DNA of 63,762 nt from Octopus bimaculoides (GCF_001194135.2 NC_069003.1:33290977-33354738), one strand, 5' to 3'. Shown: positions 25,501 through 34,500, numbered from the stretch's first letter. Made by a program: numbers and translations. The notes: generated from the sequence alone by a model not told the origin.

Positions 25501-28500
25501 NNNNNNNNNNNNNNNNNNNNNNNNNNNNNNNNNNNNNNNNNNNNNNNNNNNNNNNNNNNNNNNNNNNNNNNNNNNNNNNNNNNNNNNNNNNNNNNNNNNN
25601 NNNNNNNNNNNNNNNNNNNNNNNNNNNNNNNNNNNNNNNNNNNNNNNNNNNNNNNNNNNNNNNNNNNNNNNNNNNNNNNNNNNNNNNNNNNNNNNNNNNN
25701 NNNNNNNNNNNNNNNNNNNNNNNNNNNNNNNNNNNNNNNNNNNNNNNNNNNNNNNNNNNNNNNNNNNNNNNNNNNNNNNNNNNNNNNNNNNNNNNNNNNN
25801 NNNNNNNNNNNNNNNNNNNNNNNNNNNNNNNNNNNNNNNNNNNNNNNNNNNNNNNNNNNNNNNNNNNNNNNNNNNNNNNNNNNNNNNNNNNNNNNNNNNN
25901 NNNNNNNNNNNNNNNNNNNNNNNNNNNNNNNNNNNNNNNNNNNNNNNNNAGAGAGAGACAGAGTGTGTGTGTGTGTGTGTGTGTGAAAGAGAGAGAGAGA
26001 GAGTGTGTGTGTGTGCATGAGAGAGAGAGAGAAAGAGAGCGAGTGTGTGTGTGTGTGTGTGTGTGTGTGTGTGTGTGTGGATGCGTGTGTGTGTGTGTGA
26101 ATATATATGAGTATAAGCAATAATATGGAATGAGTGTTGTGTTGACCATCTGAACACTTGTTCATACATGTACTCATACACACACATGCATACACTCATG
26201 CACATTCACACCTACACACACACTCACAACTACACACAAGCACACACACACACACACTCATATGCACACACACCCATGTACTCTCACCTCTTCACACACA
26301 CAAACACACATTCACTCCACACACACACACACACACAAGTACACTAACACATGAGCAATACCTTCTTTACATTTTTTCTGTTCTTCCATTTTCTTTCAGT
26401 AAGCAAAGATTCCAAAGGATTCGTGTCTGTGTTCCATGCAGGAGAGATCCTTCCTTTGTGTGTTGAAGCAAATAAAAGTAATACTGGCATCTATGGTACT
26501 GTCTGCATGAACACTGCACAGGGGTAAGTTCCAATTTCGGATCTCTTCCTTTCCTCTTCTTTTATTTTCCAATGTCTCCCCCATATTTCTCTCTGCCCCT
26601 TTGCAAATCTTGTTATGTATATGGTATGCTTAATTCCTGTCCTTATGTATGTGTGCCTATCATCATCATCATCATCATCATCATCATCATCATCGTCGTC
26701 GTCATCATCATCATCATCATCATCATCATCATCATTTAGCATCTGTTTTCCTTGCTGGCATGGGTTAGATGGTTTGACTGGAACTGGTAAGCTAGAGAAC
26801 TGCACCAGGCTCGTCTGTTTTGGCTTGGTTTCTATGGCTAGATGCCCTTTGTAACACCAACCACTCCACAGAGTGTAGTGGATACCTTTCACGTGTCACC
26901 AGCATGGGTGACTTTTAAGTATCACTGGCACAGGGAAAATATGTGTGTGTGTGTGTGTGTGTGTGTGTGTATGTGTAATTATATGTGCAACTGTGTATAT
27001 TATTTTGTTCCTTTCTATTTTTTCTTACAAGTGTGTTGCATACATCATTAACGGGCAAGAATGTCAGTAAAGGCGTCATGACTACTTATGATGCAACAGG
27101 AAAATCAGTTTTTGGATCCTACAAACTGTCCACAGTAAGGTGAGTACATTTTGCACTTCTGCTAAATTAACTATTTCAACTAATAACTATCAAAAAACAT
27201 AGAACCTTTAATTAACTAATTATGAGTACAAACAAACATATAACACACACACACACACACACACACACACACACACACACACTCACGCACACACAGAGTG
27301 TATAAATCTGATGGATGACTTCTACCTGTTATGGTGGGCTAGACTCAATTCCTCCCTGTAATCAACTGGTCTTTGGCTACCTTTAGTGGAGTACATTCAG
27401 TTGCAGTTGGTTTTAACTCATGGTAAAATAGCACCACCAACAATATAGAGTTAGTAAATTCATTGTTAAACCACCAAAACAAGACATAAATTTCTTTTCC
27501 TTCTGCATCCAAAAATGAATGTTGTTTCTCTACATTTTGCAAGTCTTCTGTTGTCATAATATTTTATCATATTTTATCTTATTCTAATTACTCTATTTCA
27601 GTTCATGCACCCAAGCAAGAATACAATGTAATAAACCAGGTAAGGATTGATTGCTCTGGAGTTTGGATGAGTGCAGGTATATGAGAGTGTGTATGTGTTT
27701 TTAGATAGATAAATATATGCATTTATATATATATAATATTTGTATGATTCATGCATGTGATTGTAAGATATTTCTTCTACAGAGTGTGGCAAACAACCCG
27801 AATCCAAACCTTCCGTCAGCCATTACATTCAGTATGGTACCCAAGCATTACCTAAAGAATATCCCTGGCAAGGTTTGCTATTGAGGAATGGTAAATTTAT
27901 CTGTGGTCTGACAGTTTATACAAGCAAGTGGTGCATCACTGCAGAACACTGTGTAGTGTAAGTATGAAACTTTTCCTTTATTCCATTATCATTAGAGGAA
28001 TTTTTCAGGTCAGGGACTGTGGATGACTTCCCAAATTCTTTGATATGTTAGTGCAACAGGGGCACAATACCTATTCAAGATCAGCTCTACAAGCATAGAA
28101 ATGCCAACAGCTGAACCAGTCCAAGATGTGTGTAGGGAACAAAACCATTTTGCACACTATCATTCAGTGTCTGCGTACTAGAGATCTGAAATATCATATT
28201 GAGCAACTGTTGTTGAGTATAGGATGAATCCAGCTTGTATCAAACAGTTTCTTTCTTGTGTAGGACAAATCCAGCTCTCATCAGCTTCTTCAAGTTCCAC
28301 TTGAAGAGAAAGGTGTGGGTAGATTGTGAGGTGTTCACTTTTTGCATGTTGGTTTTGTATGAAGTGTACTTTAAGAGTACGCATCAGTATCGTCATCATT
28401 TAATGAACAGTTTCCATACCAGCATGGGTTGGAAGGTTTGAGAGGAGCTAGTAAGCTCTGTCGTCTACTTTGGAATGGTCTCTATAGCTAGATGCTCTTC

Positions 28501-31500: not shown

Positions 31501-34500
31501 TTTTCCATCCCTCTCTACCTCCACTACCTCCGCCATCTCTTTTAATATTCATTTCCCCATATCCCTTACATCCTTCTCTTACACTCAACCACCAATCATC
31601 CATATCTTTCCCTTTACATTGCAGGGTGACAGTGGAGGACCACTGGTCTGTCGAAACAGCTACGGCCGCTTTGAACTGGTTGGTGTGGTCAGTTTTGGTT
31701 ATCCGCTCTGCAGTGCACCCAATGGTACAGCAGCTGCATTTGTGAATGTGTTAGCAATGCGTGGTTGGATTGTTGATAAAACAAGTAAGACAATTGTATT
31801 TAGCTGTTGTTGTTGTTGCTACTACTACTACTGTTGTTGTTGTTGCTGCTGCTACTGTAGTTGTTGTTGTCGCTGTTATCATCAGGGCAGTGAGCCAGTA
31901 AAATCATTGGAGCATCAAATAAAATGCTTTGTGACATTTGTTCAAGCTCTGTGCCTTGGGTTCAAATCTTGCCAGCATCAACTTTGTCTATCATTTATAT
32001 TTCTTCTTTAGTGTGTCTTTATTTTATGAAATCCTCCAGAATTGATATAATAAGGTACCAGTCAAATACTAGGGTCAATGGTATTAACTATCTCCTCCCT
32101 TCAGAAAATTTACTGACTTTGTGATTAAATTTGTTTTTCATAATGGGACATTAAACATACACCGGTAATGTGGCATATGATAACCCCAAGCCTAAGTCTA
32201 CATGACAATACCAGTAATAACAACTAACATTCCATTCTTTGATTTAACAGGATGCAAGATACGTTGTCCCAAGAATAACAAATGTCTATATGAGCCAGAA
32301 ATTTGTGATGGAGTAAGCCACTGCAGTGATTCCAGGGATGAAAAGTCACCATATTGTAGTATGTATTATATGTCTGTATATAACCCACTCTTTTTCACAG
32401 ACACGCACATACACATGCACGCACACACACACACACACACACACCAAGTAAATAATATATTCAAACTATCATTATTTGGTTCGGCTTTATTTTTACACAA
32501 GATTATCCACCATCTTTCCAACAACAACCTTTTTGAATTCCATATGACAATCACCTGTGGACATGCTTCTAAAATCAAAAAACAACACAGCACCCATGAC
32601 TTTCGGAAACATCTTTTCACTCTCAGAATTACTGAAGCATAGAATAAACTATATATATANNNNNNNNNNNNNNNNNNNATATATATATATATATATATAT
32701 ATATACACACACATATATATTTGTCTTTTGTATTTGTCTCAGGTACATCAGTTTCTTGTAACTTTGGTAGCCCTTTCAAGTGTGGCTATAGCAATGCATC
32801 TTCTTCCAATCCATGGTATTGGACCAGTATTCTTCATCAAAGCCCCCAAATCACTTCTCAGCCATCAACCGGAGGAGATGAAGACACAGGTAATTATAAA
32901 CAATAACATTTCACACACCAACCTTTATTTATTTATTTATTTATTTATTTATTTTTGGGGCCAGGTTCACATCTGACCAGTTTGTTAATCTGCTTGTTGC
33001 TTTATGCCTGATAGTATATTTTTGAAAGGCAATATTATTAAGCTACTTTTTTCTACCATATTTCTGTTGAAATCTGGTAACATACATTGCCTTTGTTTCA
33101 ATTAATTTTTAAAATAATGAAGAATTCAGTGAAATAATTTTATCATTATTAAGCTGGTCTCTGGAACAGAAATTAACATATCATTTTGATGGGAAATTAT
33201 GATTTAGACCACTTTAAAACAGTAAGATTGTGTCACAAAACCAGGTGCAGTTTCAGATGCTATAAGTACCAGAAATATACTGAATTAAGAAATTTTTTAC
33301 CTGTTAAAAAAATTAAGTGGGCTTTTTATAGATGGAACAACATTCTTATTTATTGAATAACTTTAGTCTGAGCTGATTGAGATGGTAGTGAGAAGGTGGT
33401 AGCAGTGAAGATAGTGGCAGAAATGGTGGTGGTGGGGGGTGTCTACATGTTATATGGTACAAGCGGTGGTGGTGGTGGTGGTGGAGGTAGTGGCGGCGGC
33501 GGCGGCGGTGGTGGTGGAGGTAGTGGCGGCGGCGGTGATGGTTCTGGTGGTGGTGGTATCTGTGGTTGTGAGGTGGGCTATTAGGGTAGAATCAATTTAA
33601 CTCCATCCCTCTATGCATTCAATCCACATATAACAGGTATTAACAGAGTTCAGTAATATAAAACGGAATTGATTAAATTCCATAATTAAAAGACATTCTT
33701 TTATGACATATTATTTTCATTTATCTACTTATTCTTCTTCTTCAGACGAGTTCATGATAGCTGCCCTCAGTGCAACAAAAGACAAACCAGCTCTGATGGA
33801 ATCACCAGTCTCCTCCAACGTACCTTGCATATCATTTTTGTACATTGCACACAGTAATTCTTCTTCAACCCAAGCTGTCCTGAATGTTAAGGCTAAGGTA
33901 GAAAATTCTTCAGCAATGTTACCTATATGGAACAACAACAAAAGCGCCAATGTCACTTTGGAAAGTGCATCACTTCACTGGAAACTGGCCAGGCTGCATC
34001 TCCCCAGTGACACCAAATCAGTCGTGTTTGAGGCATATTACATGAATCCAAACAATGCATCCTTTATAACCATTGATGATGTTCAAATTCAAGGGGAAAA
34101 CTGCAAACGTACGTATAATTAATAACATTAATTAGTACAACTGCCACCCAATAATGATACCGAAATACATGAGCTGATGAGACAGCTAGCCCATAGGTAG
34201 ATATCCAATGTGCTGGAAATAGCAGCCAAATATTTGAAGGTGTGAAATTCTGCATTGCACAGTTTTTTTTTCTGTTAATTAACCAGGGATGCATGGATGG
34301 ACGAAAGCCATGTTGTCTTAGACTGGTCAATATATGCAGCTGATTTAGATTGAACAGCCACTGGTCAAAACCTACAAGAATCCCAAACAGCAACAGGTAG
34401 GAGAATGCTTCAGAAAAGTACCTGAAGTAGGCAAGGAAAATGCAATAGGTTTGGTCAGTGGAAGAAAAAAATACTGTATTTTCCAGCATACAAGTTGACA

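Follow-up and report, generated by a model that had tools for sequence, protein, structure and literature searches.

A tyrosine activation site and a proline-based S1 pocket in the protease domain of a giant mosaic gene of Octopus bimaculoides

We analyzed a stretch of 63,762 nucleotides from Octopus bimaculoides (GCF_001194135.2 NC_069003.1:33290977-33354738; below, the window, numbered from its first letter) that encodes a chymotrypsin-like serine protease domain of the S1A family. Four exons on the + strand, at 27783 to 27957, 29339 to 29601, 30814 to 30944, and 31625 to 31784, make up this domain, and the span 27783 to 31784 singled out in an earlier note, which had been made from the sequence alone, coincides exactly with the limits of the four-exon module. 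The domain lies within a gene that occupies at least 5.8 to 61.4 kb of the window (≥55 kb) and encodes, in order, MAM repeats, an LDLa domain, an SRCR domain, a second LDLa domain, an SRCR-like stem, the protease, LDLa and MAM domains, and then at least 17 further LDLa exons. Judged from sequence, its predicted activation bond, Tyr15-Ile16, and its S1 pocket based on Pro189 are real and conserved, though as a departure from a familiar enzyme family they are modest. Arthropod initiator proteases already provide established cases in which a non-basic activation site goes with a non-tryptic pocket; the slightly unusual features here are Pro189, the I-Q-Y/F-G N terminus, and the internal position of the catalytic domain in a giant protein.

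The window is eukaryotic and contains introns; the exon model was assembled by hand, a bare listing of open reading frames (ORFs) having given only fragments. All four exons are bounded by a pyrimidine-rich acceptor ending in cag and a donor beginning with gtaag, and the intron phases around and within the module run 1/2/1/0/1, with phase 1 at both entry and exit. Classical trypsin/kallikrein-type genes have the same phase pattern, in which His57 falls close to an exon's end and the last exon opens with Ser195. Exon 1 (acceptor ttctacag/AG, donor GT/gtaagt, where the slash marks the junction) encodes Cys1 to Tyr15, Ile16-Gln-Tyr-Gly19, Cys42, Leu44, Glu56, His57 (27947 to 27949), and Cys58. 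The 28-residue peptide around the activation bond is encoded at 27785 to 27868 (+ strand), and alignment to chymotrypsinogen and PDB chains, together with the codon map, puts the predicted scissile bond at 27824 to 27829, between Tyr15 (TAC, 27824 to 27826) and Ile16 (ATT, 27827 to 27829). Exon 2 supplies Asp102 (29472 to 29474), Cys122 (29532 to 29534), Cys136, and a GWG motif; exon 3 supplies Cys168, Cys182, Pro189 (30933 to 30935), Ser190, Cys191, and Tyr192 and ends in phase 0 just before Gly193; and exon 4 supplies Gly193, Asp194, Ser195 (31631 to 31633), Ser214-Phe215-Gly216 (Gly216 at 31697 to 31699), Cys220, Ala226 (31733 to 31735), and Phe228. Exon 4 has no stop codon before its phase-1 donor, and the RefSeq model runs on into the next LDLa exon. 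The critical junction between exons 3 and 4 (TAT/gtaagt ... cag/GGT) joins PSCY to GDSGG; it is confirmed because the spliced product of 242 amino acids (aa) is 100% identical over all 242 residues, those of exon 1 included, to XP_014778705.1 (P0067 in our collection), a partial O. bimaculoides model named "transmembrane protease serine 9-like" (TMPRSS9-like). The domain contains no frameshifts or stops. That the gene is intact and annotated, and that a relative with 59% identity over the domain (P0140, described below) keeps the same residues, tells us that the feature is not a product of chance.

Two further observations concern these exons. Both Ser195 and Ser214 (31691 to 31693) are encoded by AGT, a codon of the AGY type, as is also the case in the P0140 transcript; the choice between TCN and AGY codons at these serines has served as a lineage marker for S1 proteases. 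Dense microsatellites with units of two or three nucleotides, of the (TG)n, (TA)n, and (GAT/GGT)n types, lie immediately beside the protease exons (e.g., 29138 to 29326, 31020 to 31115, and 31790 to 31900) and yield long spurious ORFs within the introns, such as a CCCCYYYY run after exon 4, which could mislead a reading based on ORFs.

The spliced domain matches the Pfam Trypsin profile (PF00089) with E = 6e-44 (150.9 bits, against a cut-off of 20.6) and 549 PDB sequences at E ≤ 0.001, with enteropeptidase as the best of these (4e-32). A MAFFT alignment with bovine chymotrypsinogen places Tyr15, Ile16, Gly19, His57, Asp102, Pro189, Ser190, Cys191, Tyr192, Gly193, Asp194, Ser195, Ser214, Phe215, Gly216, Ala226, and Phe228, and the corresponding motifs read /IQYG (the slash here marking the activation bond), TAEHC, DIALL, PSCYGDSGGP, SFGYPLC, and AAAF. 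By alignment, the catalytic triad His57/Asp102/Ser195 and the oxyanion-hole Gly193 are intact; the zymogen elements Ile16, Asp194, Cys1 (CGKQ), and Cys122 (PVCLP) are in place; and all five chymotrypsinogen-type disulfide pairs, including Cys1-Cys122, are present by sequence. An AlphaFold2 model derived from an alignment of 55 sequences has a predicted local distance difference test (pLDDT) score of 85 to 97 across most of the domain, somewhat lower confidence in loops 185 to 195 and 217 to 225, and a disordered activation loop (pLDDT <50 for PSVSHYIQ). In Foldseek searches the model aligned with S1A catalytic-domain structures at target-normalised template-modelling (TM) scores of 0.80 to 0.89 and root mean square deviations of 2.3 to 3.6 Å, its neighbors being plasma kallikrein, FXIa, plasmin, the matriptase zymogen, and chymotrypsin, with TMPRSS2 also found. 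Every membership feature that we tested was thus present, and the domain is a bona fide S1A protease of the ordinary chymotrypsin fold. All of the sequence observations in the earlier note hold, the count over the exon 3/4 splice included: tyrosine is the P1 residue and IQYG the predicted new N terminus by the chymotrypsinogen and PDB alignments; the spacing from Ile16 to Trp29 fits without gaps; and the triad motifs TAEHC, DIALL, and GDSGG are undamaged, as are Gly193 and Asp194.

Across the related domains, residue 189 was assigned by an ungapped count back from Ser195 together with a small local alignment, the large MAFFT alignment having wrongly given Asp to proteins of the Asn clade described below. 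When HMMER aligns the octopus domain with enteropeptidase, Asp189 is matched by Pro and Gly226 by the middle Ala of AAAF, and a search of the PDB with the segment 182 to 220 alone returned bovine chymotrypsin at the top, with Pro opposite its Ser189. The series Pro189-Ser190-Cys191-Tyr192, which had been obtained by counting across the exon 3/4 splice, is thus reached by RefSeq identity, HMMER, the segment search, and MAFFT alike, and the alignments to enteropeptidase and to chymotrypsin, where a residue other than Pro might have emerged, both give Pro. Gly216 and the Ala226 that had been called only probable likewise stand in the MAFFT and HMMER alignments.

The S1 pocket residues Pro189, Ser190, Gly216, and Ala226 are all uncharged. 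Under the rule that relates residues 189, 216, and 226 to S1 specificity (PMC10036332), an uncharged 189 with Gly216 and a small 226 would fit the chymotrypsin/chymase class, in which Ser, Thr, or Gly and not Pro is canonical at 189. A pocket that lacks Asp189 and has Gly216 and Ala226 makes trypsin-like specificity very unlikely, and a non-tryptic preference, probably for hydrophobic or aromatic P1 residues as in chymase, is likely on the same residues. Of the chymase-like preference for aromatic residues first proposed, the non-tryptic part is likely to hold; the aromatic part is a prediction, and an uncalibrated one.

We then examined the relatives of the domain. Word-index searches with the spliced domain, P0067, and the P0140 domain gave best hits at 37 to 38% identity, and the one with the spliced domain missed even the RefSeq protein that the window encodes. 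It took an exhaustive profile search, re-ranked per domain, to recover P0067, P0140, and the paralogs. P0140 (1,392 aa) is encoded by a transcript contig without introns from run SRR27666060. It is co-linear with the octopus gene, having the same domain order on both sides of the protease with matches to SRCR, faintly to SRCR_2, and to LDLa, and its ORF is partial, ending in an unspliced donor. It reads CGTRPKKMFENY/IQFG, PSCYGDSGG, SFG, and PAAF and so retains Tyr15, Pro189, Ser190, Tyr192, Gly216, and Ala226, while the remaining propeptide has diverged. Nucleotide identity between the two is only about 69% in the best exon, and the codons for Tyr15 (TAC/TAT) and Pro189 (CCC/CCA) differ synonymously. 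A second set comprises the octopus paralogs P0129, P0178/P0196, and P0001 (34 to 38% domain identity), in which the same MAM/LDLa/SRCR architecture precedes a C-terminal protease. These share Pro189, Gly216, and Ala226 and an I-[QRK]-[YF]-G N terminus, have a conserved Asn at P1 (EPN/IQFG, EPN/IRYG, and ESN/IKYG), and carry Thr or Ala at 190. In one of them (P0129/P0194; O. bimaculoides LOC106867184), residues ~1193 to 1200 read CYVDSGGP, a replacement of the oxyanion-hole Gly193 by Val with the triad kept; this member of the clade may have weakened catalysis or none. Two shorter proteins, P0010 from the clam Ruditapes and P0158, have F/IING and Pro189; their residue 190 is Leu or Thr and their residue 226 Ser or Thr.

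Among 403 related domains, Pro189 occurs in seven catalytic domains and one pseudo-protease, in keeping with the earlier remark that it is unusual. The P1 residues of the seven are Y, Y, F, F, N, N, and N, none of them basic, and each subclade keeps its own P1 residue. Across 379 related domains, Arg or Lys accounts for 303, Phe for 12, Tyr for 10, and Asn for 8, so that non-basic P1 residues occur in 76 (~20%). By these counts, Pro189 is the mark of one small clade, whose members of known source are all molluscs in this sample.

Tyr15 and the Pro189/Gly216/Ala226 pocket are compatible in principle as an own-substrate pair, and the pairing is kept in P0140. We infer that autoactivation is chemically possible, a proposal that the Asn-P1 paralogs partly undercut. 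The mechanism that we prefer, tentatively and at a little short of an even chance, is trans-autoactivation of the Tyr15-Ile16 bond promoted by clustering. In this scheme the enzyme would be chymotrypsin- or chymase-like, favoring large hydrophobic or aromatic P1 residues, and would stay inactive until a chymotrypsin-like cleavage on the C-terminal side of Tyr15, for which active copies of this protein or of a paralog from the Pro189 clade would be responsible, acting in trans. The MAM and LDLa domains would favor the cleavage by clustering the molecules, and afterward the Cys1-Cys122 disulfide would keep the N-terminal MAM/LDLa/SRCR arm tethered and the C-terminal LDLa array would stay contiguous with the catalytic chain. 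We favor trans-autoactivation because the pairing of Tyr15 and pocket is conserved in P0140, because Phe at P1 accompanies Pro189 in P0010 and P0158, and because the stem resembles that of the enteropeptidase/TMPRSS family and ModSP and Factor C offer precedents. Many enteropeptidase/TMPRSS-type proteases autoactivate, and ModSP/HP14, Factor C, C1r and the MASPs, and matriptase-type proteases initiate their own activation. ModSP, described as "chymoelastase-like, prefers P1 Leu," autoactivates (PMC10732536), and in Factor C the autocatalytic site is Phe-Ile (PMC11836539).

Several points weigh against autoactivation by a matched pocket. The predicted specificity derives from the single rule for residues 189, 216, and 226, and it is uncalibrated because neither the literature search nor the top PDB matches yielded a characterized S1A enzyme with Pro189. 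The octopus paralogs with Asn at P1 share the Pro189/Gly216/Ala226 pocket; therefore, no simple correspondence of P1 and S1 runs through the family, and the match proposed in the earlier note fails as a family property. Asp189 is present in 11 of the 26 related domains whose P1 is aromatic, so that an aromatic P1 often signals a separate chymotryptic activator. Finally, G44L and A56E, two substitutions beside His57 taken up below, might alter or weaken catalysis.

The simplest reading of the P1 distribution would be that each subclade has a P1 suited to its own activating protease; for the Asn-P1 paralogs one may speculate that this might be a legumain-type enzyme. Applied to the present domain, it gives an account that we regard as a substantial possibility, though short of probable: a different chymotrypsin-like protease, either digestive or upstream in a cascade, would cut Tyr15-Ile16, the S1 preference of the enzyme itself would have no bearing on its activation, and the correspondence of P1 and S1 would be coincidental. 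Differing upstream activators would suit a P1 that is clade specific (Tyr, Asn, or Phe) while Pro189 and Gly216 stay constant, and the aromatic-P1 domains with Asp189 point the same way, as does the frequency of non-basic P1 residues noted above, by which non-tryptic activation is common in these invertebrate-rich families. However, large multidomain proteases with clustering modules are typically self-activating cascade initiators, as ModSP and Factor C are, and the aromatic P1 in the Pro189 clade coincides with a pocket predicted to accept it.

The Asn-P1 paralogs also bear on the pocket itself, which might not be specific for aromatic residues but shallower or unusual in some other way, preferring Leu or Met or small residues in the manner of elastase or a chymoelastase, or even a residue such as Asn, in which case Tyr15 would be a poor self-substrate. 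Proline takes up more room than the serine at 189 in chymotrypsin and chymase and has no calibrated example, and residue 192 is also unusual, Tyr being found there in 12 of 402 domains. Nevertheless, Gly216 and Ala226 would leave the mouth of the pocket open in the manner of chymase by the 189/216/226 rule (PMC10036332), and Phe or Tyr at P1 accompanies Pro189 in two of the three subclades; we consider a non-aromatic pocket unlikely.

The substitutions flanking His57 raise a different question, whether the domain in O. bimaculoides is catalytically impaired or drifting and serves mainly as a binding or scaffold module for which activation cleavage is unimportant. Leu44 (27908 to 27910; CGLTV in place of CGG) and Glu56 (27944 to 27946; TAEHC in place of TAAHC) each occur in none of the 402 related domains, P225A is nearly unique, and residues 44 and 56 face each other over the Cys42-Cys58 hairpin beside His57. 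P0140 holds the canonical CGG and TAAHC, and the paralog P0129 has lost its oxyanion-hole glycine. Set against these are the intact triad, Gly193, Asp194, Ile16, and disulfide pairs and the undisrupted reading frame. Identity to outgroups is 34 to 35% for the octopus copy versus 36 to 37% for P0140, and because these values are the same, the substitution rate is not accelerated; AlphaFold2 is confident around residues 44 and 56 (pLDDT 96 to 97). Impairment strikes us as highly doubtful.

Should the prediction be borne out, no S1A protease whose S1 pocket has a proline at its base would have been given a function earlier, and the enzyme would be a candidate self-starting extracellular protease for cephalopods, for which we found no proteolytic cascade described in the literature searched. 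A small Pro189 clade exists, so far seen only in molluscs. A bolder proposal, which we hold to be quite unlikely, is that the Pro189 proteases form a previously undescribed subfamily of giant MAM/LDLa/SRCR mosaics, seen here only in molluscs, in which P1 and residues 190 and 226 have co-diverged between subclades and the Tyr15 member would be a self-activating, clustering-triggered initiator, the cephalopod counterpart of ModSP, Factor C, or C1r, acting, e.g., in mucosal or humoral defense. Octopus skin-mucus proteomics papers name "MAM and LDL-receptor" proteins; none of these could be tied to this gene.

The rest of the gene was reconstructed on the + strand chiefly by tblastn with P0140. 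Upstream of the protease, an LDLa exon at 5823 to 5993 is followed by MAM-domain exons at 7652 to 7798, 9026 to 9226, 10309 to 10629, 14643 to 15246, 16178 to 16306, and 18904 to 19266 (Pfam MAM scores of 4e-27, 9e-10, and 8e-13 in these upstream exons). Co-linear matches with phase 1-1 splice sites then give an LDLa domain at 22338 to 22451, an SRCR domain at 22949 to 23098 and 23575 to 23742, and a second LDLa domain at 24695 to 24832. The SRCR domain is a true one (Pfam 2e-17), and the LDLa domain at 24695 is weak (Pfam 3e-4 and 21.2 bits, under the 24.1-bit cut-off). Directly upstream of the protease lies the SRCR-like stem, in exons at 26351 to 26524 and 27033 to 27137 (100% identity in tblastn with P0193), termed SRCR-like on the basis of a faint SRCR_2 match in the corresponding region of P0140. 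Downstream, LDLa (32251 to 32358), MAM (32745 to 32897 and 33742 to 34110), and LDLa (35206 to 35328) domains are part of the RefSeq model (P0067/P0193), with Pfam scores of 6e-15 for MAM and 6e-8 for LDLa. Beyond them, an array of at least 17 phase-1-1 LDLa exons extends from 38652 to 61405, as found by a cysteine-pattern regular expression combined with a splice-site scan and by tblastn with the LDLa repeats of P0140; many of its exons are followed by Ser/Thr/Pro-rich linkers.

The two available gene models, XP_014778705.1 (545 aa) and UniRef A0A0L8GRX6 (597 aa), cover only ~26.3 to 35.3 kb and leave out the array, the 545-aa RefSeq model thus accounting for only a small part of the gene. 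Together with the LDLa exons downstream, the co-linear MAM, LDLa, and SRCR exons upstream point to a single, largely unannotated gene of at least 55 kb. The gene models and P0140 are N-terminally partial. The product is best explained as a very large secreted or membrane-associated mosaic glycoprotein with a single catalytic module. A polyserase, or TMPRSS9 with several protease domains, is rejected on the single protease domain that tblastn gives in the window, and the label "TMPRSS9-like" is a misleading best-hit artefact.

The window is ~36% G+C, rich in microsatellites, and interrupted by assembly gaps and introns. One gap, at 25288 to 25949 (662 bases), falls between the LDLa exon at 24695 to 24832 and the SRCR-like stem and may hide an LDLa exon, P0140 having an additional LDLa repeat at exactly that point. 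An intron between MAM exons holds a reverse-transcriptase fragment (8196 to 8423, + strand, continuing to ~8530; YADDLVLIA; Pfam RVT_1 2e-6 and 28.1 bits, under the 29.6-bit cut-off) followed by a Cys/His-rich tail, probably a decayed retrotransposon of the type without long terminal repeats. A CCHC zinc-knuckle-like peptide at 47750 to 47875 (+ strand), situated in the long intron that separates the LDLa exons at 43140 and 48627, may be a remnant of a retroelement gag, with no convincing Pfam match. Similar translations containing DGGEPCCTL(P/S) at 888 to 1109 and 15481 to 15636 (+ strand) probably represent an interspersed repeat with at least two copies.

Internal placement of a protease in a giant protein is not unique to the octopus but a recurring design in marine invertebrates: S1 domains are embedded in P0181 (Ptychodera flava "LRP2-like"; 4,285 aa) and P0168 (Owenia; 2,620 aa), and P0045 (4,066 aa) contains 14 protease stretches. 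Among known systems, Drosophila Nudel, with LDLa repeats around its protease (PMC10036332), is likewise a giant mosaic in which the S1 protease is flanked on both sides by such repeats. Unlike Nudel, the octopus gene shows no second, non-catalytic protease-like domain in the 63.7-kb window, beyond which it may continue, and it has MAM and SRCR domains that are absent from Nudel's listed architecture. The single protease-like domain, the presence of MAM and SRCR, and the lack of any Nudel-named protein among the sequence hits do not support orthology, and we treat the likeness as an analogy. Chymotrypsin and mast-cell chymase share the neutral 189, Gly216, and small 226 (Ala in chymase) of the octopus enzyme but have Ser in place of Pro189 and are both single-domain proteins. 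Chymotrypsinogen is activated at Arg15 by trypsin, and chymase by removal of a dipeptide. Horseshoe crab Factor C is trypsin-like in specificity, so that a simple match to S1 does not account for its cut at Phe-Ile. It nonetheless resembles the octopus protein as an invertebrate mosaic S1 zymogen that is autocatalytic at an aromatic P1 (Phe-Ile; PMC11836539), with a different domain set.

ModSP, Manduca HP14, and Tenebrio MSP are LDLa-containing modular S1 proteases with clustering autoactivation and non-tryptic specificity (PMC10732536) and in these respects are comparable to the scheme preferred here. In contrast to the octopus protein, ModSP and HP14 combine LDLa with CCP (Sushi) and Wonton domains and a C-terminal protease, lack MAM and SRCR, and differ in their S1 residues; Pfam searches found no CCP domains in P0067, P0193, or P0140, nor did we find sequence kinship to ModSP/HP14 beyond the S1A family. 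By analogy, the octopus protease may work like the ModSP/HP14 group but is not a member of it. The nearest relatives in both architecture and sequence are enteropeptidase and the TMPRSS proteases. The octopus protein departs from two features that define them: they have Arg or Lys at P1 and Asp189 where it has Tyr and Pro, and their protease is C terminal, whereas that of the octopus is internal, with an LDLa and a MAM domain after it and then at least 17 further LDLa repeats; no SEA or CUB domains were seen in the octopus gene. What they have in common with it is an LDLa/SRCR stem directly before the protease, here represented by the LDLa domain at 24695 to 24832 and the SRCR-like exons at 26351 to 27137, as well as MAM and LDLa modules, the Cys1-Cys122 tether, and the logic of zymogen activation.

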